NCBI GenBank assembly: GCA_964035545.1 | Contig: OZ037765.1 | Coordinates: forward strand, 15,934,995-15,998,994 | DNA length: 64,000 bases | Direction: 5' to 3' | Source: Bugula neritina | Taxonomy: Eukaryota > Animalia > Bryozoa | Part shown: positions 1,008-58,164 of the stretch, one piece after another | How the letters are laid out: every line of letters starts with the position of its first letter | Numbering within the stretch: the first letter of the stretch is position 1 | Made by a program: the position numbers and the translations under genes | The notes under the pieces: generated by a model | What the model was told of the DNA's origin: nothing | Database searches by the model: none | The model's input: only the letters and a program-made list of their open reading frames with translations

Positions 1008-2620
1008 TGTTTAATTTACTAGCCTTAGAATTATAGCAACTGGAATGCATTTTGTGTAAAATGGTTATTGCAAGCATTATCCAATTCATATTCACATTGT
1101 AATCACAGCAAAACTTAAACTTTATAGCTTTATATTTACAAGCATGAGTGAGTTTTAAATTTTTTTTTAATTTTATATGCATAAAAAATGTGTTTAAAAA
1201 CTTTACCAATAAATGAAACTAAAAACATGTACACATAAAAGAAAAAAAAATAATAAAATAACAAAAGTGGCAAAATTTTCTCTTTATAACTTATATAAAC
1301 TCGCGATACCAATTTTGGCATAATGACTCCTCATGCTCTAAAGTCGCCACTCCGGATATACCACTCTGTTTAAAAGCCACTCGTAAAAATTTTTGTATTG
1401 TGATAACTTAATCAGCCAATTTTGGAATAACATTCAACACTCATTGTAAACATTGTTATTTAATTTTGACTTTGACAATTAGATGACGGACTTATATGTT
1501 AATACTTATATCGCCTACGCCTTCTTAATTATCGCTTTTATGCTGTCAACTTCACTAATTCATGATGTTTCCAAAGGGAATCAAATAGCGATTAGGCTAG
1601 TTAGATTTCACTTTTTGAAAATAAGCTTCCGCATCAATATGATTTCAAGGATTTTCAGTTTGACTATAAAGGGGTACCCGGACAAGCATTATTAACTGAA
1701 ACTCAGAACTTTTTTCAGCAGAGGTATAAACACAACTTTACACATGTGTCAAGTCAGTAGATCTTATTATTTCTTCTAACTGGATATTTTCAGTCAGTAT
1801 AAATGATAATGCAAGATAATGCAAGTATCATAATTAATATGTGAAAAGAGCTACGTAAACTAGTTAGCACTTCTTTATTTTATCTGTTGAAAATTAATCG
1901 TTTCAAAACCTAACCTTGATCAGAACAAATATAGCAGGCTTGAATATTTTCATAGAACCTGTCAAAGGCTCAAAGCTGACCATTTTTATACGACCAAGCA
2001 TATTTAAGTTGAGTTTAACTAGATCTATAAAATATAGTTGTACTAAGAGCCTTCATTATAAATAAAATATTATATATTTATATTAGCTAACAAATTTATA
2101 AAAAAAAATAAAAGCATGTATTCATCTTCACTAATTATTCAAATACTACAGCAATATGTGCGATATTTGCATTCATTCAGGGCCATGCAGCTATGTAGCA
2201 AACTAAATAGGAAGTACCAGTAAAATTAATAGTAAACACCAAGACAGCATTCATCTGATGTCTTCACACACTGACGTCGCATATTCCAGAATAATAATTT
2301 AATACTCAAGTTACATGTGTGAACTCAGAGACCATGAATGTATTCAAGTAATGGTGAATGGAATAGTAAACAGCGTGCACAGGCTATTAAGCAATTGTAA
2401 ACCTCAAGTTTTTTACGAGTTAGGCTTGAGGTTTGGAGCAGATCATATGAAGATAACTCTATTTGTAGGAGATAAAATAATTGTACAAATTTACTAATTT
2501 AAAATGTTGAACAACACCAAACAGAAAGAAGTTTTCAATATTGCAACAGTAAGAGTTTGGGAGTGCACAAAATTCTATGAGAAATCTCGATTATCTGTTG
2601 AATAATATTTTCAAAATCTT

Positions 2621-5600
2621 TTAATCTCTAGTTACCTTTTCTTGAAGCTTGTGGGAGGAGATGTAGTGCATTTCAGTTATAGTAAAGTAGTCCTTGTCTT
2701 TTGAAATATTAGATGCAAGAGCTTCACTAAATTCTTTCCACTTGGCCGATTCTTTATCCAAACTCATAAATGTGGGGCGAAATTTGACAGGTTCTGCTGG
2801 CTCATACAACTCTAATAGTAAAATATTTTGCCAAATGCTTATCTAGTGTTATAATATGACTCTATATGTTATCATACGCCTAAATAGTTTATACTGCTAT
2901 ATATTGCTCCATGTTTATACCTTACACAAAATACAACCGAGTCTACAGAATAACAATCATCTATTCAACTTTGGCTAAAACTATAAAACTATGGTGTAGC
3001 TAAAACCATTACAACAAGAGACAACCAGAAAATTCTTGCAGGATTTTAATTATGGAACAAAGGGAAAATCACAGAGATCACCTATACACTAACCTTCTGA
3101 CTTTTCTACAGTTGAATCAGTAGTTTCAGTTTCTGAACTCTCCATGAACTCCCCACCTACTGCATATGAACTAGTAGCAGGCTGTGTGAGTTTATGTCTA
3201 CTGCCAGCAGAATAACTGCTGACTTTGCGCTGAGTAGGCAGCTGCTGCTGTGGCACATCAACATGACTATCAATTGTCTTAGGTAAAGCTCCAGTTTCCA
3301 AGTAAATCAACAACTCATCAACATTAAAGCTGCTGACACTACAAAATTGATTGCATTCCTTTAGACTTTGGAGTTTAACCAAAATAATTTAGTATAGTAA
3401 CTTCCATTTTATAAAATCTAGAGTTTTTCCGAGTTTCATGTGTTAGATAATTAATATTTAAAAATAAACGCCTTTGAATTCTAGTTTCTGACTAACAGGA
3501 ACTGCTGCACATCAAGTTCTGGGCTTTACTTTATTATGAGTTCATTAGAATGTCACATAATGTGGTCGTCTACTATGTAAAATCACATTTGAGAATTCAT
3601 AAGAAATAACCCTGCTGTTTAAGAAGCTTATCCTATGTCTCAAGCCAGATTAACAATGTAGTCCATGCACTTCAATACAAGGTAACAGTTTGGTGCTAAG
3701 TACAAACTGATTTGACAGCAGGTTAAGACAGGCTAACAACTGATGAGCAAATTATGTGCAAGGCAGTTACCTCGATGGTGACAGTTGAGTTAAAGTGTGC
3801 TGGAAAGTGATAAATCCTATAGGACATATCTGGGGAGGTATTTGACATGGTGTTTCAAGAGACTCATCAGCAAACTGATACGAATAGTACATTCTAGAGA
3901 GGAACATATTTGGAGATTTTATTAGCTGGGAAGTGAGAGTATCAAAACCGAGCTGCGGCTCTCTCTTCATTTCAGATAGATGTTCCATTTGTTCATCTAC
4001 AGTTTTTACTTTTCCCTAAATCAAAAATAAATCTTTTGACCATTACAATAACCTCAAATAATTGTGCTAAAAACTTCACTTAGAGATCTTAGAATGGTGA
4101 CAGACATTTGACGGAGAAAAAGCTAAATAAACATTCACCCTGCATCAAGTAATCTAAATAAGATTTAGCTGCACTTTATTGACAACTGAAATTAACATTA
4201 ACAAACTTCCATACCATAAAATGTTATGCTTTTAATATTGTAATACTAATTTTACCTTCATTAATTTAAAAACAAGAAGGGTTCTTTGAGATTCTCGAAG
4301 AATATTTTCAGATGTTATATCAGAATGTCTGCTAAGCTGAACTCCTAAAAAGAACAATTAAACATTATTATTTACATTACACAGGGTCATAATTATGGCA
4401 AAGCCTAGGCATCACTTTAATACAATTTATATACTTCTTAAATTTTGTGAGTGTAGCCCCATATAATCTCAAATGATCATAGACTGGCTTGTTGATAATC
4501 ACATTAAGGAATACCAGTTGCACAATTGCACAGCCTCTCATCTGTACAATAAGCTTTTTGTAGTCAATAGGCCTGTCAGGCAGCCGAAATAAGCATTGAC
4601 AATATTTTTAACTATCCATTTAACTACTATGCCTACTTTAAAATTAAAAAACCTAGTGAAATATTTTAATATTAGTAAAAATTTGTCTACTGTTATAAAT
4701 TACTACGCATATATAGAACACCAAATCTGTACCAATGCTTATCCTTTTGATTACTAAATGGCAGTCAAAGGTTTCAGCGCTAGTGTAAATTCACTATTAT
4801 TCATCTACACTTGAAGTGGAGAATTTCAACATTGGTTGCAATTTTGAGAGGTTTTAAAAATTACAACACTTAATATGATGGCACCAGTTGCCATATTTTC
4901 GTAGATGTATTTCTTCAAATATCACTCCTGTTTGAAGTACAGTACTTAGTATTATTAAAGTGCATATATTATTGGGAAAATCTGCTAAACAAAATCAACA
5001 TTGGTAGACAAATAAATCTTTTTTGATAAGCCTAAAACACTTGGCATATTATATACCCAAGATTTTCAGTTACTGATATTAAGCTGCCATACTATTTACA
5101 GCTGCTAACATCTTATTGCTTAATTTAACAACACATGCATTGCATACAGGTGAAAAGGTGAACAGGTGAAGATAAATCCCAGGTGGGTCAAAGCTCTGCA
5201 AGAGACGATCCCTCTCTTGTGCTATTGTAATTATTTAAATTATTTTTAAACACACTAACCCAAAACTCATCATTCTAAAAGTTATGTACGGTGAACTTTT
5301 TATTTATTGGTCAGTAATGTTGGTTATGAAATGTATCATGGCAGAAAATTTGCAAAAAGTAAAGAATATGCAAAGCAAAGCTGATGTACTGTCAATACTA
5401 ACCCAATGCTGGATCACACAATGCGGATTCTTTCAAGTTTCCTATCTCAATTCCATTTTTTAGAATGTTAGCAACTTGAACTATAGAGTAGGACTCAACT
5501 TCAAGAAAGCCTAAAGTGTCAGTGGTCATATCATCATTATACCCTTTTTCTTTCCAGTCTTTGCGTAAACGATTATACTACAAATAAGATTGTACAAAAT

Positions 5601-7864
5601 CTATATTTCATGAACAAAAATAATGTAGGAAACAGGAAAAAATATTGTAAGGCATTACAAGAATATTGTAATTTTATGTAGCAAAAAATTTGTAGAGCAA
5701 TTCAATAGGAACGAACCCTCTACAAACTTTGTTCAAGTTGTTGAACTTTCACTGAAGATATCGAGGAAAAATCTGGAAATCTAACTTATTACTAAAGTAG
5801 TGATAGTTTGTTTAGCCACAATGGAAAGATCAAAAAAACTAAATGGATAACTACAGAACAATAAATTGTCCACAGGAAGGACTTTTCGCAGAAATATCAT
5901 TGTCCTTAAAAGTTGTAACCTCAAACTCACTTGATGGGAGTTAAACAGAACTGACAGCATGTTTAATGTATTATAAATATGGTGAATAAATTAGGCCTTT
6001 TATATGCTGAAGGCAATTCAGTAAAATAACACATATACATATACATAAGTAAACAAAAATAATATAATTAAAAACTTGGTTCAGCAGCATAAATTCTAGC
6101 AAGTATTATTTCTGTACCCTGAACTAATGAATGGGGGCTTTTACATCTATACAGAAATGGAAAATACTTTTGGCAGCTGATAGAAGTACATACTTGGTTA
6201 CACATGCTAATACTAAGATGACCACTTGCAAGAGTTACAAGACGCCTTATTAATGCTATCCAAGTTCAGCTAACAGATCTTTAGAGTGACACAAGTTTAA
6301 AGCAGTTATTAGTTGGTTTTAAAGCTCAAGAGCTGCTCTGTTAACTACACCAAGAATAACAAACAAATCTAGTCAAGTAATTTTTGCAAAAAAACCAAAC
6401 AAGTAAAATAAAATGAAATAAATTCTAAGTTGGTCACTACATTATAAGATGATAGCAACTGAGGCAAAACTTTATAATAACAATTCAAAAATCAAGCCAC
6501 CAGAAAATTCTGCTGCGTCAGGAATAAAATAGAAATGGCCAGAGAGATAACAGAAAGAGCGGCAACACAATTTCAATAGTGCTTATTCAAAATTAACAGC
6601 TAATAAAATAACCTGCAATATAAATAATTGAAGCCCTTGATATTTGTCTTGTCATACCAGAAAGGAAACTTTGTGTAATCCTGTGATTAGTCTTTTTACC
6701 TGAGCTTCAATGCTAGGGTTGTATATTTCATAAAGTTTGTTGACAGAGTAGGCCTTAGAAGCAGCACCCAGCGCATATACATGATTGTGGAAATCTCTCT
6801 TCAGCTGGCTATATTCTCTAGACCCTGGTTGCAGCTTTTTAACAACCAATTTGGCCACTACAAAAATATGGTGTCAATGTACAACTGCTGGCTACAGCTG
6901 TTATCCTCCATGAATCGATAACATACAAATAATTGCTAGAAAGAGAAACTAAAATTTACCATTGTTACCTACTTTGCCATTTGTACCCTTATTATTATTA
7001 TTACCTATGCCATTTTCACCTATGCCATTTTTACCTGACACGCCCACATATACACATAAGGTAGCATTCGTAAATAAGGTCACGCTTTCTCTAAGGCTCA
7101 AGTACTCAAAGAGTATCAACAGCCAAACTAATAGTTCACCATTAGCAGCTGGAGTGATGCATAAATGCTGTCAAGTGAATATGCCATTTTAGATTCATCA
7201 AACTGACATGTTTGGATATTGCTTTCCAAATTTCTCTTTTGTCATGGGCATTAAATATTTTCTTGTGATTTACTTGCTTTTTAAGATTATCCTTCAAAAC
7301 CAGCTTATAAACTTCTTTCTTGTATAATGATTTTGGTGTAAATTTCCAGAAAATAGTTTTAAAGGTACATCTTCATATTTTATGTAAAACTGACTATTTA
7401 CCAAAAATATGTATTTACAATCAAAAGCAGCAAGCTCAGTTATTCAAATCCAAAGTTCCATCAATGATACTGAATTTTCGATATGAAATGAAATTAGACA
7501 TATATTCAGGGGATAATAGCATCAGCAAAAACCTTTGACACTCTACAGTCTACAACTTTGTTTACAGCATTGTACATGCCAGTGTTGACAATGAAATTAT
7601 CATCAAACATTTTTTATGTGAGTTACTTTTTAACTGTAAATAAATGTTATGAAATACATGAGAAAAATCTACATGTACAACAGTGAATTAAAAAGGCAGA
7701 AAACCAAAATAAGTATCCAGGATTGAACATATTTCAAATCTAAAACTTTGTTGAAAACTTCAACTACGCAACTGCTATTTAGTAAAAGCAATAAAATATC
7801 ACTTCAAGCAAAATATTACTATATAAGGCATACCTTTTTTCTTTGGAATACTGTAACTTGGCAT
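2621..7864 (-). CDS. TASOR/TEX15-like protein with DUF3715 (pseudo-PARP) domain; at least 8 coding exons, 3' end unresolved
   Basis: Phase-compatible GT-AG exons (minus): 7864-7834 (MPSYSIPKKK; frame open upstream to acceptor at 7897), 7034-6960, 6857-6700 (VVKKLQPGSREYSQLKRDFHNH...YNPSIEAQ), 5577-5403 (YNRLRKDWKEKG...TLGFLEVESYSIVQVANILKNGIEIGNLKESALCDPALG), 4344-4256 (VQLSRHSDI...LLVFKLMK), 4015-3771 (GKVKTV...REPQLGFDTLTS...MYYSYQF...PPQICPIGFITF), 3365-3094, 2811-2636 (or read-through to stop at 2621). Motif order matches recalled vertebrate TASOR: FQIPRK..., PLTPGSREF, YAFLMV, ILGSPSMGVYLSRYAD, VIFKIMKGKIK, RPRHVCPYAVVSF. About 407-411 codons visible. Confidence 0.82.
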
Positions 7865-8559
7865 GCATGATAACATGTTTATATTCCATCTAAAACCCTG
7901 CAAAATTGTCAAAAATTGTAAAAATGAACATTTACTACACAACATCTATTTATAACAAGGTGAAAGAAAAGAGCTAGGAAGCATGCAATATGAAACCCCT
8001 CTCTTTTTTATTAAATATGTACCACAATGGATGTTATAGGAGCACTTTGACTTGAAAGCTTTCTTTAGCTATAACTCACTATGCTAGCTTTTTTGTAGTG
8101 TAAACAGCAGAGAAAGCGTAAGAATTTGGCTGAAAGAAATCAAATATACCACTGTTAATAACTGTCAAACTACAAGCAGAGCCTACTGTCTGTCAGCATC
8201 TGAGGGTAATCAGCAACCAATGTGGTTAAAATGGGGTATTTTAAATCTATTATGTATACATCTGGATTTTTCACAATCTAGAGAAAATTCTTTTTCCTAT
8301 TTCAAAATCATTTCATTTTATAATTTTATCAATATAAGTAGGGCAATGTTTTCAAAAATGAAAATGTTTAGCTTCCTCATATGTAAGCTGTTGAATCATA
8401 GTTTTAAAATATTTTTTTCTGCATTATGTAAAGCCATCTTTGAAATCATTTTCTACTTTTATACTATTTGCCTAGTAGCAACTTTAAAAATCAAAAAGCA
8501 AAAGCCTCTTAAACTTTCTCGTTCTACCATCATGATGTACATTTCTTTTTTCTGATTTC

Positions 8560-18590: not shown

Positions 18591-19880
18591 ATACTTCGAT
18601 ACTTCGACTTTAGCACACGCTAGATCACCATAAGGCGCAAGAGGCGTGCCTCAGCAGCTTGTTACAATACATTTGACATAGAATTATAACTGTATTTGCA
18701 TACATTATGCATTTTAAATTTGGTAATTGTAGTACCTTTCAGGTTATCATTTATCAAGTATTTAGGGAGTTCCAATTCTTAGGTCTCTAATAGTGCGCGG
18801 TAGGAAGCTGTTATGATATGCTGTGCACATGGCAGATATCGCAGTTGGTATTCCGTTAGAGGCAGCCCTCGTGGTAACCGTAGCGGTTGACTTGTCCCTT
18901 GTCAGTTCAGTGTAGCTGGAAGATAATGCCTGATGACATTCTTCTTTGGACAAGATCTTCAAAAGGAGGGTTATTCGTAGGCTTTTGCGACGATCTTCCA
19001 GTGATGATATGTTGAGTTGTTCTCTTGCATCACTGATGCTAGCCTCCCGGCCTTTGAGACAGCAGATGAATCTAATAGCTCGGTTCTGGACTAACTCAAT
19101 TTCCTTCACAAGTTGCTTTGTTACAGGATCCCAAGTGGTTGCAGCGTATTCTAGTATAGGTCTGCAGAGAGTCATATATGCCAGCAGCTTTGCTTTCTTG
19201 GGAGCTCCATAGAGGGATAGCTTTAGCATGCCAAGAACCTTGTATGCTTTGTTTATTTTCTTATTTATGTGGCTGTGAAACTTGAGGTTAGATTGTAGTG
19301 TAACTCCAAGGTAGGTAATCTCATCTACGTAGGGCAATGTTTCTCCCCCTAGTCGATATGATGGTTGAATTTGGGGATCTTTGCCAAATGACATGATTCG
19401 GCATTTTGAGGAGTTGAACGGCATCTTCCACTTCAGAGACCAATTCTCAATCTGTTCAATATTCTTTTGGAATTTTCGGACATCATCTAGGGAGTCTACC
19501 TCTTGAAAAATCAGTGTGTTATCAGCAAATAAACTGACACTGCAACTTAGTAGATCAGGGAGATCATTGATGTAAAGAAGGAATAGGGTGGGCCCCAGGA
19601 CAGAGCCCTGTGGAACGCCAGAAAAGACTGGTAATCTACCAGAAGAGTGGCCATCTATGATTACTTGCTGCTCTCGCTTTGTCAAAAAATTCTGGAGCCA
19701 TCGGAGTATGTGAGGATTAATTCCATCAACGACGCTTAACTTATGTATGAGTAGCTTGTGGGGGACTTTGTCGAAGGCCTTCTGGAAGTCGAGGACAAGA
19801 GCATGAGTGGTGTGAGAGTTGTTCATTGACCTGGCAATTTCATGGAGGGTTCCACAAAGCTGTGTTTCGCAGGACATCAT
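18591..19880 (-). mobile_element. 5'-truncated non-LTR retrotransposon (CR1/L2-group-like LINE); open RT + C-terminal ORF and 3' UTR
   Basis: ORF 19880-18762: SCETQL, LDFQKAFDKVPH, SGVPQGSVLGPTLFLLYINDLP, LFADNT (YADD site), YLGV, RPILEYAATTWDP. The 3' UTR ends with a stem-loop (gcacgc...gcgtgt) and a short aagt(at)cg tandem tail at ~18591-18612. Confidence 0.9.
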
Positions 19881-29380: not shown

Positions 29381-31351
29381 CTCCCTTAACTTATCATTAT
29401 ACACACCAACAACAATCCTATTTTTAACAAGCTGATCACAGATACCTCCATATTCACAGTTATCTGCTTAGGACTGCAGATATCTGCGTCACTATATAAG
29501 AAAATCAGAAGCATAATTGTATATTTTTGTAGCTTAGCATAATATAGCACAATACCTATAGAACTATTTTTCTGCCTTCTGCAGAAGTACAACCTTTTGA
29601 ATGGGCAAGTCGATGGTCGTCAAGTAAAAAATCTGCTTACCCTTGTTATCAATTCCGGCATTATCCAGTCTTAGTTTGACATTTCTCACTCTATCATCTG
29701 AACCTAGCTTGACTTCAGTGATTATTCCTATGGTCCATTGATTTCTTGGTAGGTTTTCATCCACTATCATCACTATGTCATATTTTCTAACATTTTTTGT
29801 GGCAGCTCCCACCTTCGTCGTTTCGTGATTTGGCCTAGATACTCATCTCTCCACGCGTTCCAAAAGTCACTGGCAAGCTGCTGCAATTTCCGCCACATCT
29901 TTTTACCATATATCTCAGTGTCGTCAAAGTTCCCAGGTGGTGCTGAAGTCTTATGAGTGATGAGGTGATTAAGAGTCAGCACAGAAATTTCATGATCATC
30001 TAGTGCACTTACTACTATCGGCCTGCTGTTGACGGTTGACATTGCCTCATGAAAAGCTACGCGCAAGCCTGTAGTGCTCAACCGGTTTTTTATGTTTACC
30101 TCCTAACAAAGCATTTAGCACTGCTTTGACACTATGAATTTGTCGTTGCTACACTCCTCAAGCGTGTTTTGCTTGTGGTGTATTGAACACGAATTTAATA
30201 TGCCTTTCCTGTAAGTACTTACTTGAAGCAGTGTTTGAGCTAATGGACTCCATTTCTCTTTTCAACTCATTAAATGCTCCAATAAAGTTTGTGCCTTGGT
30301 CGCAATAAATTGAGTGAACTGCCCCTCTAAGACAAATAAATGATCATAAAGCATTAATCAAAGAATGTGTGGTCATGTCATTGAGGAGTTCCACATGCAC
30401 CGCTCTCGAGTACATGCATATTAGCAAAAGCATCAATAATTTTATTTCGGAGCGTCTATCTCTAACCACAAATGGTACAAAGCAATCCATGCCTATGTTG
30501 GTAAATGGTGGTGTTGGTTGCAACCTAACCGCTGGCAAATCTCCCATAATTTGGGTTTCGGGTTTTCCCCTACGCTTCTTGCATGTGATGCACATAGACA
30601 GTGTCTTATTGACTAAGCTTTTAGCACCTATCATCCGATAACCCGCATTTCTTATTGCAGCTTGAGTGAATGACCCTCCTTGGTGGTGAACTTCGCCATG
30701 ATGTTGCCGTACAAAAAGATTGGCTACATTTTCTTTCTTAAACAAGATGATTGGGCGCTTTTCTTCAAAACTAAGAGCTTCGGAATTGTTTACTCTTTTT
30801 CCAATGCGCAGCATTCCTATCTGGTCAATGAATGGTTAAAGCTTGACTAATGCGCTTTTCTTGCTCAAAGATTTCCCAGCATAAAGTGTTCTTATCTCCA
30901 CACTGAAATGTTAATGCTGAATTTTCAGTATGACAGTCGTACTTGCAGCTTCAAGGCTTTTCTGGTTGACTAGCTTTATTGGTCATTTGTTTTCAGATGA
31001 CTTTTGAATACCTTGTATTATAGCAATTATGCGTATTAAGGTGCCCCAAGTAGAAAACTTGGTAAACTTATGTGTAATGAACGGCGTCGCAGCAGATGCC
31101 AATACTTGGACTTTCTTAAGTTTTGGATCCGATGGGTCAATACGATAATTCTTTTCTTGGGGTTGCTGGAGTAGTTTGGGGCTTGTTTCGAGCAAACATT
31201 TTAGGCCAAAAAACCACATGGTGTTGATTAACTGGTCACATCTTTTGCTCCGCGATGCTATGTCTGCTGGGTTTAGGCTGCTCCGAATGTAAAGCCACTG
31301 TGATGAGCTTGTTCTCGACTTAGTCAGTTGCACTCTTTTGTGGACAAAGGT

Positions 31352-32568
31352 TGTAGATTCTACCCCAGTTTATTTATAATAGGTTGCACTGCTGGAGTTT
31401 TGCTGATGTTTATTGAAACCAACTGGTAACCAACGTGAAACTACAATAATACAATTTAATAATAAAAACATTGATGAAAAAAAAAATGAAACATAAAACA
31501 TTACAAAATTGTTGCATAACATTAACAATGTTCAACATACCTCTATTACCCTTCCTGGGGAGAGTTAGAATTAAATATATAAAGTTGTGATAGTGAAAGT
31601 TTAATCAAAAATCAAAAATGACTAGTGAGAACTACAACAGTCAGTGGAGAAAACACCTCAGCTACTATAATTTCTGGCTAGAAGCTATAAAAAGCTGACA
31701 GCTATTCTGGTAGCAAAAATCATTGCATTGTAATAGTGAAAACAAAGCTATTTGTGGTTTAAAAAAAGCTGTGGCTAAGTAAGTATCTAAGTGAGTAGCT
31801 AAGTGAGTATAAGGGTGAATGGTGATGAATTGTCCTGTGCCACTGTATGTAGTAGTGTGTAATATAATAAAAAATGATCAAAACGCTACAAAGGTGTTAA
31901 ATCGCTTTGTATGAACTAGGCTGTGATTTGGGCAATAAATCCTCACTGATGTCCTTTATTATATTATTATTCTAACATTACATTGGTTGATCTCATTTGA
32001 CACTCATTGACTTCTATTGACATCGTCAAGACTACAATTGTGATTCAAAACTTACACAATCTCAGCATAAACACATATAAACAACCCTAAAACTACAAAC
32101 AGTTGCAATCCACGAAAAAGAAACAATATAATTAATATAAACGACTTACTTATTTTTGCTCTCTTAATATTACAACTAGTTCACTAGGACCAACTATTGC
32201 CAAGGGCCATTTAGTTAGCACTGACTGTGCTGTAGAAAGCTTTTCTTTTTATGTTTTTAATATAGCCAAGATAGCTAAGCAAACTCACGCTAATTTCACT
32301 ACACACCCCCCAAAAAATCGCTCCGATTTCTCAAACATCTGATGAACAGCTTACAATGTTAGTGAAATTGTTTTCTATAACTACACAAAAAAAACACTAC
32401 AGTCAAAATTATTTTTTGCGCTCTTAACATTACAACTAGTCTACTAGCACCAACTATTGCCAAGTGCCAGATGTCTTTTAGTTAGCACTGACTGCTGTAG
32501 AAAGCTTTTCTTTGTATGGTTTTAATATAGCTAAGATAGCTAAGCAAACTCACACTAATTTCACTACA
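31352..32568. repeat. ~1.2 kb unidentified insertion in BEL RNase H carrying a ~155 bp imperfect direct repeat (32149-32303 / 32409-32568)
   Basis: The BEL frame (WIADENKR | ..FVHKRV) resumes across it. Two copies of ttatttttgc..attacaactag..gtagaaagcttttc..gatagctaagcaaactcac.ctaatttcactacac. Confidence 0.7.
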
Positions 32569-33911
32569 CGCTTGTTTTCGTCTGCTATCCATGCCAGTGT
32601 TATTTTGAAATCAATCCAAAAGTATTTGTCATCGATGTCCGTATCTAGTTCTGTCTTGAGAGTCTGACTCAATTGTGGAGCCATTACAGCGGACATAAGT
32701 TCCAGGCGAGGTATAGTAAATAGTCCCTTTGATGGTATCACTTCAGACTTTCCAAGCAAAAGTGACACGTGTACTTCTCCTCTGTCGTTAACCAGACGAA
32801 TGTAGAAGCATGCACCCATCTCATTTTCACTAGCATCGCAGAAGTGGTGTAGCTCAGCTTGAGCAGTTGAGCCAAAATTTTTTGATCAAATACATCGTGA
32901 AATTTGAATTTCTTCTTTGGTCGGCAATTGTTCTATCCAGTTTGTGCATAATCTCAAATTCGTATTGTCTATTTTGTCACCCCAACCTAATTTTGCTTCA
33001 TTTACCTTTTGTAGAACGAGTTTGCCTTGCAAGGTGTATAGGGCAAGAAAGCCTAGAGTTTTGAAAAGCTGGCTTACTACTGACAGGATTCCTCTTCTGG
33101 TGTCTGGTTTATTTTTATGTTGTTGACAAATTTGAAAGAATCCGTGCTCAATGACCACTGCAGGCCTAGGGTTCTCTGCTCTGGTAGGTTCCCACTAAAC
33201 AATTCTATGTCTTGAACCGTTCTTCCCGATTCTGGTAGAGATTCCAGAACTTTTGCGCTGTTGGAGGTAAACTTATGAAGCCTTAAGTTACCCTGTCTGC
33301 AGATTTCTGTTGCTCCCTTGATAAGCTCTGTGACTTCAGATTCAGAATTAACACTTGTCAACCCGTCATCCAGGAAAAAGTCTTGCTTTATAAACGATGC
33401 TGCTTTGTCGGAGATGTTCCTATTATCATTCCCAACTTTGCGAAGGTTGTAAGTTGCGACCGCTGGAGACTTGGCTCTGAAAAGGTGCACTTTCATTCGG
33501 TATATTTTGGGCTTTCTCTGCTTGTCATGCCACAAAAATTGAAGATAATCACGATCCTTGGGCTCTACCAAAAAGTTATAGAACATCTTCTGAATATCAC
33601 AACTGATAGCAATCTCCTCTTTTCTAAATCGGCACAGAATTCTCAGCAGTGAGTTTCTCATGTCAAGTCCTTGCAGTAGATGGTCGTTTATTGAGGTTCC
33701 TTGCTATTGAGCTTCTGCTTCTTTGGGTGTGTGACAGAAAAATGAGGGATGAACCATGGCTCCCTCGGTTTTCCTGACTGTCTGATCCACTGACTCTGCT
33801 AACCCCGTATCCATTATTTCATTCATGAATTCCGTATATTCTTGTTGAAGCTTTTCATCTTTTTTGAATCACCTTTACAACAGTTCGTGTCATTTGTGTG
33901 CCTGTTGATAA

Positions 33912-34351
33912 TGTAGTAGCTCATGGACATTCAAGGGGGAAACTCGTTTTCCCTCTCTTTGTTAATATATATATATATATATATATAGTTATATCGCGAA
34001 TAGTTACTAGTCATAGCGTTCCTACATTGCCCGTCTGTCATACGGCAACCACGTGGCTGGTGATGTGACTGTTCCCCAATCCTTCAATCAGGATGAAGAC
34101 CAACCTGTAATCACAAGGCAAGAGATTCTCCCGTGTCAGTACAGACTAGCTAGGTTGACAGTAAACACTCATGTAATCATTGTATCAGCTTTCTGACTAA
34201 TGTAAAGTTTTCTGACTATTGTATCTTGTATAAATAATACATCTTACTATTATTCTCACACTACAATCATTTGGAGTTGATTATGTAACTATCTGTCATG
34301 TGTTAACTGGACTATACACAAAGACTCACATCAAACATAGAAAACATAACA
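33912..34351. mobile_element. Solo LTR inserted in the BEL element (4-bp TSD ATAA)
   Basis: TG...CA termini with ATAA at 33908-33911 and 34352-34355. Removing it restores the BEL motif LNNY|QQAHK. Contains a short (TA)n. Confidence 0.8.
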
Positions 34352-35820
34352 ATAATTGTTTAGAAGAATCAGTCTCGTTTTGAATGGTAGAGGTATTTGA
34401 TAGGAGCCAGACTCTAGTATGGTTTTCTCATTGTCCATGATGCTCAGGAATTCGGCATCATCTTGGGACTTCCTATGTAAAGTATCATGTACTTTGTCAT
34501 GACTTTCTAGGGTGGTGGTGATAGAAGCACTTACTTTTGATTCCTGCTTACTTTGCTCTTTAACACCAAATACAGCCCAGCCATGCTCTGATCTGATTGC
34601 ATATGTTTGGTTGTCCTCCCCTTTTTTAGCTTCTAATGGAAATGATGCAGCTGAACAGTTAGCTGCTAGAATTAGCCTAACAGGCACATCTAATGATGGT
34701 GGTAAAGCATTTTACAGAGAGCTCAAGTGCTGGCATTGCTTGATATTCATATTGCTTGCAAATGCTTCGGTAGAATTCGGAATGTGAGGCCACTCATAGA
34801 CAGATGCAAGTTTGACTTGCCCACCGAACTACCAATTTAGTAACAAGTCACCATACAGACTTATATCTTGTTTCGATGATTCCCCAGACATAGTTTTTAT
34901 ACCAATAAGCTTTTTCTAGAGGAATTTTAGTTGAAGCTTGTTTACTAACGCAGCAGTGATAAATGAATGAGCTGAAGCTGAATCTAAAATTGCGTAAACC
35001 AAAATGCTATTGGATGGATTTGATGCGGGTGAAATGTACACGGGTATCCCTATATTAAACAGTTGCGTGTGGTCACTTGATTTAGTACTTTTATTGGAGA
35101 GCTTAATACTTACATGGCTTTTCACTCTTTAAAAAGTTGATTCTATCTTCGTCTGGCTTTTCGAATAGCTAGAAGCAGTGCACAGTGGGGTGTGACTCTA
35201 AACAGTTTAGGCATGGTTACTTGCTCACAGCTGTTGTAGCAAATGACCTGATAGAATTTTTGGTTTACCACTTTGATCTTTGTTGTTTGTGTATACATAC
35301 GTTTTTACGATGATGGACGGTTTGATGCTTTGCTGGTAAACAGAGGTAGCGATTGCAGTTCTGCTTCTTCAGGGATAAAACATGCAAATTCATCGAATCG
35401 GGGATATCTCTGCTCGAATTTTTGAGTCTGACCAACTTTACCAGCCTACTTCCTCTTAATCCATTCTGGTAGTTTTTCACATAGTTGCTCATTTATTTGT
35501 GAATCGTTTAGTATTTTCAGCTCTTAATGGATTGAATGCCACTCACACATTGCTGCAAATAGTCAGCATACTTTCGAAGAACTTGTGCGTCCCCACTATG
35601 AACTTTTGGCCATTTGCTTGATGTATCCCTCATTGTCCTTCCTACGTCAAACATACTGCCATATTGTTCTTTCAGCTTCTGTCTTGCGTGCATGTGAGAT
35701 TGTTCTGTTCTGATATAAAAGTCTCCATTTATGCATTCTCTGGCATTTTCACTAAGATATCTTTTAAGATAGCTTAGTTTTTCTACTCCTCTGATTATGC
35801 CTTGCGACTCGAAATAAAGG

Positions 35821-35828
35821 TATACATA

Positions 35829-35905
<77 letters not shown>

Positions 35906-54473: not shown

Positions 54474-56080
54474 ATGGCGTTGTTAGATGTAATTCATGCT
54501 GATCAAGTACCAATGCATTCAAAAATGCATTGTGTAAGAGGTGGAAACACTATAGCTTGTGGTTCAAATGAAGCTTTCGTAAGTTTACTTGATATTAAGT
54601 TAATATTACATTTTTGGTTCATCTGACTGCACTGTTTTTAAAACTTTGATAAAAACAAACACATGATCAAGTATTTCAAATTCAATTATTCCAAGTCATT
54701 CACTTTCAGAATCAGCGATACAGCCCATACCACAACTATAACTCGAACTACTAATAGTTCTTAGTTGATGTTATCTATGCGTGGAGTTAGTAAATGGGAT
54801 ATTTATACGGTCACACTAATAGTTATACTAATAGTTATACCTATAATGAGTTTGACTGACACTGACAGTCACAGTGAGTTGACTATTAGTATTACTATTA
54901 GTATTAGTATTAGATTACTATTAGTATTAGTATTACACTTACAGTATTATCATTAATATAAGTATAAGTATTAGTATTATATTTATAGTTATAATAGTTA
55001 TAGTATAACTATAACTTATAGTAATAGTTACTGTTAAACTCTGTTGACAATAACATTAGCATCATGATAAACATGATGATAATTTATAAATAAACATTAA
55101 CTTTAAGCTTAACTTTATTAGTATTAGCATTAGTATTAGTGAATTACTATTACTGTGTGCATGTCTATTAGTTATAGTATTTCTATTAATATTAGCTGTT
55201 GATTATGGTAGTGGCACTGATGAAAGACAAACGGAAACATAGGGATGTTCAGTTGAATGTTGTCTGTTGATACTGATAGTCTGAATTATTGAATTTAATG
55301 CTACAATAATAATAATTATTAATTTAGAATAAAAATTATTACTTGGTGTTCAACTTAAAGTAATAGCTATAATTATTGTTACATGAATATACCTGAACTT
55401 ATGCGTAATCCTAATATTTATAAATAATAATATAATTATAATATTAATATTATTATCTGACAGTCTGACAGTCACCGAAAATATGTCTATTAAAGTTAGA
55501 ATTGGTATAAAATTGAATTTAGCAACAACTGTAACCTATTACTATTAGACTTATTGGATATTAATATTAATTGTAATGATAGTCATAATGATAGATAAAT
55601 CCAGACATCGATAAAGCTTATACTTATAGGCTATAATTAATTTTAAAGTTAATGATAACTTACATTTATACTTCTATTTATAGTAATGCTAAGCCTAATG
55701 ACCAATGGCAAAGATTGTAGTAGTGCAGATAGAATTGGTAATACTGACAATTATTGTTGGCATAGCCATAAGGCAAGAGTGCAGGCTTGCTTTTTAAATA
55801 CTATAATAATGCTTATACAATTACAAGAATTTTTGTAATAATTGCTAATGCAAAAGGCTAAGGGTATTGCTAATAAAATAAACCCACATTATTTAATTCA
55901 AAATTCATTTTTTTATCGAAAAAAGTTGCATTTAAAATATTGTATTGATAATGATGTATGTCAAGTTAATTATTTGAAACAGCTAGCATTTCATGTTATA
56001 TCAATGATCATTGAATGCTTTATCATTGCAAAGGACTCGTATCTATATCTATATCTATATCTATATCTATATCTATATCT

Positions 56081-56152
<72 letters not shown>

Positions 56153-56185
56153 GACAAACCCCGAAAAAGCTGCTGTCCACAGATT

Positions 56186-56266
<81 letters not shown>

Positions 56267-58164
56267 GTATATAGTTGTACTTCTGGTTGTAGATTCCGGA
56301 TATTATAAGTCAAATAAACGGCCAGGACGGTGGACCTAAAATCCATTTCAACCATGGAACAACAACACTTGGTTTTAAGTTTAAACATGGAGTTATCATA
56401 GCTGTCGATTCACGTGCAACCGCTGGAGACTGGATTGGTAGGTCAATTCAAGAGCTGTGTGAATGTTTTTACTGTGGTGCAATATCGAGTCATCAATTTT
56501 TATTTACAGTGTGTAGTTTAAAACTTGAAAATTGAGAAGCTGCTGTGTTAGCTACAAGTTTCAAAACCAGTTAAGCTGCTTTCCTTTATGGAATGCAAAA
56601 GTTTGTAAAAGTAGGGAGAGAATGGATGTTGGCTTTGAAATAATTTCAGTCATCTTTATATTGTGCAGAAATGGTAATGCAATTGCAATAATGTTAAAAT
56701 TACTTAGGTGTATTCAATTGAAGGTGTTACATTGAACAAAAGTGCATGTGTTTTTTTAATTTAGCATCCCAGTCTGTGAAGAAAGTAATTGAAATAAACC
56801 CATACCTACTCGGGACTATGGCAGGTGGCGCAGCAGACTGCTCTTACTGGGAGAGGTTTTTAGCCAAGCAATGCAGGTAGGCATAACTGACTTTTGGTGC
56901 GCATTCATTTTGATTATACTTTGAGCTTTCTACTCCTTGCTTTAGCCCCTCTATTTATACCTATAGAAATGGCAAAAGTTGATATAAATTCACATTTGAA
57001 AAATAGAAGGTTCCAAATTAGGTATAAGCTGCATGCTTTCAGTTCCAAGAATTGGGAAACAATTGGAAATCACAGGTTTTTTGGTAATGCTGTAAAAGCT
57101 TATAATTTTGTTTTGCTGTTCTAGCCAACTGAAAAGTGTTCAATAAAATTTCTCAGGTGATCAACTTATCACTTTGAATGAGTGAAAATCAGTCTCTACT
57201 CTGATGTAACACATCCCTAAATATTATAATATTGTGTGGATGTTGTTCTATTGTAGAGTATATGAGCTAAGAAATAAGGAGCGGATATCTGTGGCTGCTG
57301 CATCAAAACTTCTAGCTAACATAGTCTATGGCTACAAGGGCTATGGGCTCTCAATGGGCACCATGATATGCGGTTGGGATAAAAAGGTAACTCACACTGC
57401 AACATGAAATTGATTCAATCAGTATAACTAAAATGTCTAAAGTAGGGTGTTTCAAAGTTATTGTTTTTGTAAGTTGAGATTTTCTTTTAGTTTATTCTCG
57501 CTCATTGTCTGGATTTTACCTGGTTCTAGGATGATGGTCAATAAAGTTATCTGCAAGTCGTACTGCATTACCACATTTTCTCTGTAAGTTTGGCGTTGGT
57601 GTATTTGTAGGGTCCTGGACTGTATTATGTGGATAGTGATGGTACTAGGCTAACTAACCACATTTTCTCTGTGGGGTCTGGTGCCACTTATGCTTATGGT
57701 GTAATGGATTCTGGGTACAAATGGGATATGAGCGTAGAGGAAGCCATTCAACTTGGCCGAAGGTCAATTTATCACGCCACACATAGAGATGCTTACAGCG
57801 GTGGAGTTGTTAATTGTAAGTTGTTTACAGTAATTTTCTTATAAACTGGCACAAAATAAGTTTTTGCATTACAATGGAGAGTTCCCAAGGTTTCTTACAG
57901 TATTAAGAGTTCATGGTTTACAAATTGTTCAAGCTTCTATGTAGCATGTAGCCTCCCACGCGGAGTCCTAGTTTGAAATCGGCTACTTGTTACCATGGCA
58001 ATTATATATTACCTGTGTTACTTTATGTGTTTATGTGTTACTATATGGTATCCGTTGTTGTAGTGTATCATATGAAAGAAACGGGCTGGGAGAAGATTTC
58101 TCAAGATGACACCGTAAAGCTGCATTACCAGTACCAAGATGAGAAGCTGGGCAAAGGCCATTAG
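54474..58164 (+). CDS. PSMB5: Proteasome subunit beta type-5 (chymotrypsin-like), 6 exons, 265 aa
   Basis: Exons 54474-54578 (MALLDVIH.. propeptide), 56293-56437 (HG|[23 protein letters not shown]), 56765-56876 ([22 protein letters not shown]), 57257-57386, 57611-57815 (FSVGSG; [16 protein letters not shown]), 58064-58164. Phases compatible; catalytic Thr1/Asp17/Lys33 present. Confidence 0.96.
56040..56272. repeat. Compound microsatellite (TATATC)n-(TA)n-[~40 bp island]-(TA)n in PSMB5 intron 1
   Basis: Directly visible; the source of the spurious YI/IS/ID-repeat ORFs. Confidence 0.95.

Follow-up and report, generated by a model that had tools for sequence, protein, structure and literature searches.

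The DUF3715 domain, an inactive PARP-like (pseudo-PARP) domain also known as RDTS, is a mechanistically unexplained module that is shared by the HUSH and the piRNA/TEX15 routes of transposon silencing in mammals. In the TASOR version of this domain, L184 is the equivalent of the PARP histidine, Y217 is dispensable, and silencing depends on Y305; the SPOC domain of TASOR itself was recognised in its sequence through a prediction of structural homology (PMC7532188). TEX15 domains can replace those of TASOR in L1 silencing, and DUF3715 domains can be exchanged for one another in silencing assays even when they are very divergent (PMC10578480). TASOR-like proteins with a DUF3715-SPOC-DomI layout have been reported throughout metazoa (Schopp et al. 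2023, PMC10578480), and DUF3715-only genes, termed "truncated Tex15 homologs," were present in 21 of 28 cnidarians (2026 preprint, 10.64898/2026.09.07.749791). The TEX15 domains are reported to be vertebrate-specific (PMC10578480; 10.64898/2026.09.07.749791). An earlier, sequence-only reading of the locus described here had implied that a DUF3715 gene in an invertebrate would be novel, which was overstated given the TASOR-like proteins already reported across metazoa.

We examined a 64,000-nucleotide stretch of Bugula neritina DNA (contig OZ037765.1; hereafter, the window). We consider it probable that this stretch holds the 5′ part of one expressed minus-strand gene whose product carries two tandem TASOR/TEX15-type modules and would serve as a silencing scaffold. 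All of the TASOR-like motifs listed in the sequence-only reading were located in open frames of the minus strand. Where that reading had assembled eight exons, spliced RNA contigs from three studies back seven minus-strand exons between positions 2621 and 7897, and the open frame at 7145-7372, which would have supplied the eighth, was absent from the RNA. Exon 1 (7834-7897) and exon 2 (6700-6857) are supported by RNA and have orthologous matches in the relatives L005, L016, and L022. Exon 2 is delimited by junctions 5577/6700 and 6857/7834, the latter present in four runs, and encodes the N-terminal portion of module 1 (..KLQPGSREYSQLKRDF..YEIYNPSIEAQ). The core of module 1 is encoded by exon 3 (5403-5577; ..LGFLEV..), followed by exon 4 (4256-4344; (G)VQLSRHSD..LLVFKLMK) and by exon 5 (3771-4015), which contributes its C-terminal strands (GKVKTV..EPQLGFD..MYYSYQF..PPQICPIGFITF). 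Exon 6 (3094-3338) is a linker in which a short conserved motif (FNVDELLIYLETGALP) precedes low-complexity sequence; exons 3 to 6 all have RNA junctions. Exon 7 (2636-2811; ..KFRPTFMSLDKESAKWKEF..), joined to the linker at 2811/3094, opens module 2 and corresponds to exon 2.

Every junction that had been read from the sequence was used in spliced RNA contigs (four runs, X1, X2, X3, and X5, from three studies), and at all junctions the intron ends were CT..AC on the plus strand, corresponding to GT..AG on the gene strand. The exon phases are compatible, with 31+158+175+89+245+245+176 nt giving 373 codons from an ATG at 7864. The window encodes ~373-377 residues, only part of a longer protein, rather than the complete protein of ~410 aa proposed earlier. 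A genome look-up placed each exon at one genomic locus, indicating that the spliced form represents RNA and not a retrocopy, and the gene is single-copy. At the 5′ end, RNA contigs spanned 7834-7899 and continued into 15-22 letters that are absent from the window; a trans-spliced leader is added at the exon-1 acceptor (7897). In-frame ATG codons are located at 7876 and 7864, and an out-of-frame ATG is located at 7889. The ATG at 7864 is kept in relatives L005, L016, and L022, and translation most likely starts there, at MPSYSIPKKK.

Profile searches were run exon by exon against 177,635 solved-structure sequences. The best match of the exon-3 profile was TASOR (6TL1_A, chain positions 53/55-104), with an E value that fell from 0.011 to 0.0013 and then to 0.00021 as members were added and that stood at 0.00044 with seven; in the two deepest profiles, the runner-up was ~100 to 1000 times weaker. 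The same chain was the sole solved-structure match of the exon-5 profile (positions 180-211, E 0.2), and this match sits further along 6TL1_A than the exon-3 match, in the order found in the gene. On their own, the profiles of exons 2/7 and of exon 4 did not match TASOR among these sequences, exon 4 being too short to find it alone. Their matches to designed repeat proteins (SAKe, ThreeFoil) were sums of several weak repeats and were rejected. Among Pfam families, DUF3715 (PF12509, gathering cut-off 28.5 bits) was the sole one reported for a module-2 exon, but this best score was 11.8 bits (E 0.24), and no single exon reached the cut-off. No Pfam family rose above its cut-off when every exon frame and the large downstream frames were scanned singly. 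A six-frame scan of the genome with PF12509 gave no match and was uninformative because the control likewise gave no match anywhere. Neither exon 5 nor exon 3 yielded a usable match in the ESM Atlas, and the low-confidence predicted fold of the 81-residue exon-5 fragment alone (pLDDT 59.5) comprised one helix and two strands in a long-hairpin-like arrangement. The identification of the domain as a TASOR-type DUF3715 pseudo-PARP, made in the sequence-only reading, is supported by the 6TL1_A matches of exons 3 and 5.

Relatives of the gene were also recovered. A whole-library phmmer search with exon 5 returned single-exon fragments only, namely, seven homologous exon-5 fragments (P0001-P0006 and P0009) with 37-70% identity; the long matches P0007 and P0008 were discarded as repeat-protein artefacts. 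Orthologous exons at 36-70% identity occur in at least seven other sources, in which the introns differ. L005, L013, and L021 retain the exon-6 motif, as does L016 when judged by eye.

The residue corresponding to TASOR Y305 is Phe in module 1 (YSYQF) and Tyr both in module 2 and in P0009, and the surrounding segment aligns with the long TASOR β8-β9 loop (..PPQICP.. vs. ..PRHVCP..). By analogy with TASOR and TEX15, the protein would be a non-catalytic nuclear scaffold whose pseudo-PARP modules may act downstream of RNA-guided target recognition, the presumed outcome being heterochromatin-type repression of transposons. As for partner domains, single-exon Pfam scans revealed no SPOC in any downstream open frame, the exons being resolved as far as the fourth outside the window, in line with the sequence-only reading, which had seen none. 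The Pfam SPOC matches of this genome lie outside the locus, at C1:22.12 Mb and on C3, and a Lge1/periphilin-type match elsewhere in the genome scored 23.8 bits, below the cut-off of 25. The large downstream exons likewise contained no Pfam family above cut-off. Since neither SPOC nor DomI was detected in single-exon Pfam scans, any HUSH-like assembly would be hypothetical.

We weighed a role for this DUF3715 protein other than transposon silencing, for instance, as a general transcription or RNA-processing adaptor or as an antiviral RNA-binding factor like the inactive PARP ZAP. Such a role would fit the failure of the single-exon Pfam scans to find SPOC, DomI, PIN, or TEX15 parts and the fact that function has been established for vertebrate members only (PMC7532188, PMC10578480). 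It would also fit the C-terminal part of the protein, which is not conserved with L005; a tblastx comparison of the L005 tail with the downstream region of this gene found nothing. However, the position essential for silencing in TASOR stays aromatic here and the loop around it can be aligned, and the ability of very divergent DUF3715 domains to substitute for one another in silencing assays (PMC10578480) also argues against a different role, which we regard as unlikely.

The silencing scaffold that we favor would be considerably larger than the portion within the window. Exon 7, whose last base is 2636, terminates in phase 0 with the donor AAG|GTAACT, and RNA contigs from two studies (X2, X3) run past this base into the next module-2 exon. 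This exon, which lies beyond the window, starts 4,263 nt further downstream and is joined in frame to exon 7; the continuation of the contigs matches L004:8337-8366 with two mismatches, where 0 such matches were expected by chance. The gene thus goes on at G000:C1:15933365 and lower coordinates, and the upstream 2,635 nt of the 4,263-nt intron occupy positions 1-2635 of the window. Because the donor at 2636 leads, in frame, to an exon of a paralogous second module, a single transcript codes for a tandem pair of DUF3715-like modules, in place of the intact single-domain gene described earlier. Module 1 consists of exons 2-5 and exon 6 is the short linker; exon 7 and three further exons beyond the window make up module 2. 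The module-2 counterpart of exon 3 is its paralogue, with a pairwise E of 2e-14, and the counterparts of exons 4 and 5 are colinear. Over ~85-160 shared columns, module 2 (31%) and a separate paralogue on C2 (35-40%) lie at about the same distance from module 1. Module 2 is followed by an open exon of 857 nt that has a disorder-like composition and is in part rich in Ser, Glu, and Lys, and probably by more exons of disorder-like composition. For the 3′ part beyond the fourth outside exon, only open frames and the length of the contigs served as a guide; splice-site enumeration past that exon was too ambiguous to be of use.

The two modules follow the same order in L022, the most distant relative (36-42% identical), which has an exon-7-like exon and shares with this gene the GVQLSLHPD signature of module 2. 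Judged from this comparison, the two-module layout is old, as it is common to a relative of such low identity. No second module was found in L005 within its 3.9 kb of sequence. The tandem order in L022 also bears on whether the modules belong to two adjacent paralogous genes, the join between exon 7 and the next module being read-through or an assembly chimera. The joining intron is long (4.26 kb), and contigs cannot establish the entire molecule as a single transcript, but the join coincides precisely with a GT donor and an AG acceptor, preserves the reading frame, and appears in runs of two studies. Moreover, exon 7 is itself N-terminal in module 2, so that a gene which stopped at this point would be left with a fragment of no use. 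We conclude that two separate genes are very unlikely.

The same contigs speak against a stand-alone, intact protein of ~380-410 aa that stops at 2621, the end assigned to the product by the sequence-only reading. Beyond the donor, the frame does continue for four codons before it meets a TAA, and a minor intron-retaining isoform is conceivable. However, the resulting VTRD-stop tail at 2621-2635, the supposed C-terminus, is intronic: high-depth contigs reaching 2636 splice away at this donor (X2, X3), and one low-depth contig only was observed over 2300-2665. As the product would also break off one exon into a second module, we find this reading highly improbable.

For the one gene with two modules, the catalytic positions were aligned with those of TASOR. 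The Leu of ..LGFLEV.. in exon 3 aligns with L184, the PARP His position, and is invariant, and the position of Y217 is occupied by Gln (exon 4) in all eight of eight module copies, as read by ungapped extension across the exon border. The degenerate catalytic positions noted earlier were thus confirmed: an active PARP/ART carries the His and Tyr of the NAD+ site, and Leu and Gln are found instead. Both modules are predicted to be without PARP His-Tyr-Glu chemistry, the Glu being judged by reading the aligned region and not from a mapped position. An active PARP-family ADP-ribosyltransferase is scarcely credible, since homology to TASOR brings a PARP-like fold family but the His and Tyr positions are altered as described and no active PARP structure was matched by the exon profiles in the solved-structure searches.

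On a broader view, the gene could represent a lineage-wide, bryozoan-type silencing factor with tandem RDTS modules and no SPOC-DomI, an architecture distinct from those of TASOR, the TASOR-like proteins, and TEX15. We offer this only tentatively, as a possibility that we hold with some doubt; if true, the duplicated module might take the place of assembly through partners, for instance, by forming an intramolecular pair. The gene is in any case a lophotrochozoan DUF3715 member with RNA-verified exons and a conserved two-module layout, and it is a candidate with which to ask whether HUSH-like silencing extends beyond the vertebrates. Its natural variation at residues studied in human TASOR (Y217 replaced by Gln; Y305 kept as Phe or Tyr) allows comparative tests.

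Among described systems, ZAP/PARP13 and plant RCD1 resemble this gene in having a PARP-type domain that is non-catalytic and whose triad is degenerate, but they were matched by no exon profile, the similarity here being specific to TASOR. The cnidarian DUF3715-only genes and vertebrate TEX15 share with it a DUF3715 without recognisable partner domains; the preprint on the cnidarian genes (10.64898/2026.09.07.749791) mentions no tandem module pair. The invertebrate TASOR-like proteins (DUF3715-SPOC-DomI) are likewise the products of non-vertebrate metazoan genes with an N-terminal DUF3715, whereas the SPOC-DomI that defines their class was not found here by Pfam scans of single exons. The likeness to TASOR (6TL1) itself extends from the best or only structure match of two exons, in the same chain order, to the Leu at the L184 equivalent, the aromatic residue at the Y305 equivalent, and the aligned β8-β9 loop segment, and both proteins are large, with disorder-like sequence after the domain. 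TASOR differs in having one module where this gene has two in tandem and in having Y217 where this gene has Gln. The present protein also has almost no N-terminal extension, module 1 beginning ~10 residues past the Met, and SPOC, DomI, DomII, and PIN were undetected in single-exon Pfam scans. Because invertebrate DUF3715 genes have already been reported, the current picture is unchanged: the gene is a new member of the DUF3715 family with an unusual layout and not a new kind of gene.

Open minus-strand frames contain all of the motifs listed in the sequence-only reading; each motif sits between a polypyrimidine-AG acceptor and a GT donor, and the phases agree. A search of public runs returned one DNA holder and nine runs sharing 9-14% of the window's words, approximately what is expected for exons without introns. 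We aligned four of the nine to window 2300-8200 (two RNA runs carry the label 'symbiont metagenome'). In all four, contigs skipped precisely the predicted introns, with joints at 2811/3094, 3338/3771, 4014/4255, 4343/5402, 5577/6700 and 6857/7834, and the intron ends at all six joints read CT..AC on the plus strand. Two exons were tested against the 216-Mb genome and each has a single occurrence there, so the spliced form is RNA rather than a retrocopy. After two 'cut +1' corrections to contig joints, the RNA defines exons 1 (7834-7897), 2 (6700-6857), 3 (5403-5577), 4 (4256-4344), 5 (3771-4015), 6 (3094-3338) and 7 (2636-2811), all on the minus strand. Eight exons had been proposed; the RNA gives seven, and the open frame at 7145-7372, considered as an eighth, was rejected because it is absent from the RNA.

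The gene had also been described as intact within 2621-7897, coding for ~410 aa. Exon 7 has a good donor (AAG/GTAACT) after its last base, 2636, and positions 2621-2635, with four codons and the stop, belong to an intron. Contigs from runs X2 and X3 exit the window at 2636 and extend 1.5-2.1 kb further; the first 30 letters of this continuation match the DNA just before the window (L004:8337-8366) with two mismatches, where none would be expected by chance. The match begins directly past a TTTTAG acceptor, in phase 0, and the exon opening there reads YDAVKDRWKNEGY...DPNLG and is paralogous to exon 3 (pairwise E 2e-14). It is followed by counterparts of exon 4 (GVQLSLHPD...LLVFSYMA) and exon 5 (GRQGMLLE...PAQIYPLAFLRIRF; pairwise E 0.047 vs. 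exon 5), with intron phases identical to those of module 1, and exon 7 is itself the counterpart of exon 2. We conclude that a single transcript bears two tandem modules, module 1 comprising exons 2-5 and module 2 comprising exon 7 and the outside exons at -1629..-1803, -2084..-2172 and -2260..-2484 (window-relative, minus strand; window x = G000:C1:15934994+x). The gene is thus larger than had been supposed, its second module starting with exon 7 and continuing beyond the window. The next exon after module 2 covers 857 nt in an open frame (-2712..-3568, minus strand); it is of simple composition, rich in Ser, Glu and Lys towards its end. Past this exon the X3 contig requires about 0.8 kb extra. 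The terminal exon may be an open frame of 681 codons at -7274..-9316, with which the last plausible coding stretch closes.

Pfam listed DUF3715 as the sole family for the module-2 exon piece (E 0.24; 11.8 bits vs. a cut-off of 28.5), and scans of the other single exons gave no relevant match; a single exon is not long enough for Pfam detection. A phmmer search of the whole library with exon 5 recovered seven single-exon orthologue fragments at 37-70% identity (two long matches were dismissed as artefacts), and orthologous exons were obtained from six fragment contigs of relatives (L005, L013, L016, L017, L021 and L022). We then searched exon-level profiles against all 177,635 solved-structure sequences. 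The best match of exon-3 profiles built from three, four, five and seven sequences was always the human TASOR pseudo-PARP chain 6TL1_A (E 0.011, 0.0013, 0.00021 and 0.00044, respectively), over chain residues 53/55-104, with the runner-up weaker by ~100-fold for the five-sequence and ~1000-fold for the seven-sequence profile. A nine-sequence exon-5 profile matched only 6TL1_A (E 0.2) at residues 180-211, later on the chain, in agreement with exon order. Per-sequence probabilities for this pre-named hypothesis are about 1e-9 and 1e-6. TASOR was not among the matches of the exon 2/7 and exon 4 profiles, and no profile search of this set returned an active PARP chain. The proposed DUF3715 identity is supported at the level of the exon-3 and exon-5 profiles. 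Single exons stay below the Pfam cut-off. Folding of exon 5 with an alignment gave one helix and two long strands at low confidence (pLDDT 59.5).

Degeneracy at the PARP His and Tyr positions, suggested earlier, was borne out. In TASOR, numbered here by the crystal construct (residues 110-332, 261-269 deleted; PMC7532188), L184 occupies the place of the PARP His (PMC7532188), and an invariant Leu of the family (..GFL.., ..AYL..) aligns to it. By ungapped extension over the exon border, GVQ aligns to G215-V216-Y217, placing Gln at the Y217 position in 8/8 module copies seen; a Y217A substitution in TASOR is without effect (PMC7532188). The triad of the bryozoan gene appears fully degenerate. 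Loss of TASOR Y305, in the beta8-beta9 loop, abolishes silencing (PMC7532188); the aligned position is Phe in module 1 and most orthologues, and Tyr in module 2 and the single-exon homologue P0009.

The most distant relative, L022 (38-42% identity over exons 3-5), carries module 1 (exons 1-5), a linker, and then exon-7-like (..FPTFKRTDKEW..), exon-3-like and exon-4-like exons, the last sharing GVQLSLHPD with Bugula module 2. The tandem layout at this distance argues that the module pair is old and has been maintained. In L005, exon 6 is followed by a 321-codon frame ending YRRSPG, like the 857-nt exon; no conservation was found between the post-module-2 region and L005. No second module was seen within the available 3.9 kb of L005, which could reflect loss or an incomplete view. 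A short exon-6 motif after module 1, FNVDELLIYLETGALP (window 3290-3335), is kept in L005, L013, L016 and L021, the remainder of the linker is not, and no known match to the motif was found. Elsewhere in the genome, at L020 (G000:C2:12026185-12029358, minus strand), lies a separate DUF3715 paralogue whose small exons are laid out in the same way, with exon-2-, exon-3- and exon-4-like pieces, including GVQLSRH. Its introns (L020 1265-1435 and 1901-2158) contain a run similar to the GKNG..NKGTN.KVG.NG found in translation of a dispersed repeat in intron 1 (window 6874-7060), where summed contig depth is very high (about 1350 in run X1).

At the 5' end, contigs match through 7899 and then carry 15-22 letters absent from the window. 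Extended by the shared AG, this leader is AACTTTATTATAGTTGCATAAAAG (24 nt), joined to the exon-1 acceptor (window 7897-7899); a second leader variant occurs in run X5. The leader lies at six dispersed genomic sites with 1-2 mismatches (G000:C1:13823029, C5:10536277, C8:11853182, C8:12194008, C8:12202770 and C8:12439987; L007-L012), and the control at none. Downstream of four of the six copies come a GT donor and a conserved segment, and different sequence directly follows copies L007 and L008. The four copies have the anatomy of spliced-leader RNA genes, and putative trans-splicing of the leader is seen here for two leader variants at a single acceptor. Because the leader contains an in-frame TAA, the translation start has to lie within exon 1. 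Past the leader, the ATG encountered first (7887-7889) is out of frame; the 25-codon frame that it opens at 7889 runs over the main start and terminates in exon 2. The ATG at 7864 (MPSYSIPKKK) is the start conserved in relatives.

The downstream frames gave no match to SPOC or any other Pfam family, in keeping with the earlier remark that no SPOC domain was visible, and the genome's SPOC matches are at other loci. A suggested search for a periphilin orthologue yielded one Lge1/periphilin-type match, below the cut-off (23.8 vs. 25 bits), at G000:C1:24169027-24169116; the 242-codon open frame containing it could be a periphilin candidate. Near this putative transposon-silencing gene are transposon remains (window 18762-19880 and 30344-35849, both minus strand), comprising one 372-codon reverse-transcriptase-like frame and several retroelement-polyprotein-like frames, judged by eye. 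A long TA-rich, GATA-like microsatellite (window 56023-56388) translates as YIYIYI.. and DIDIDI...

In Schopp et al. (2023, PMC10578480), DUF3715 is traced to early eukaryotes, TASOR-like proteins (DUF3715-SPOC-DomI) are reported throughout metazoa, and divergent DUF3715 domains substitute for that of TASOR in L1 silencing; the searched text of that paper makes no mention of a tandem two-module layout. DUF3715-only genes have been reported in cnidarians (10.64898/2026.09.07.749791). Unlike the TASOR-like proteins, the Bugula gene has no detectable SPOC-DomI, and from homology alone we infer a transposon-silencing role. Given that DUF3715 and TASOR-like genes are already reported across animals, the Bugula gene is a further member of a known family.
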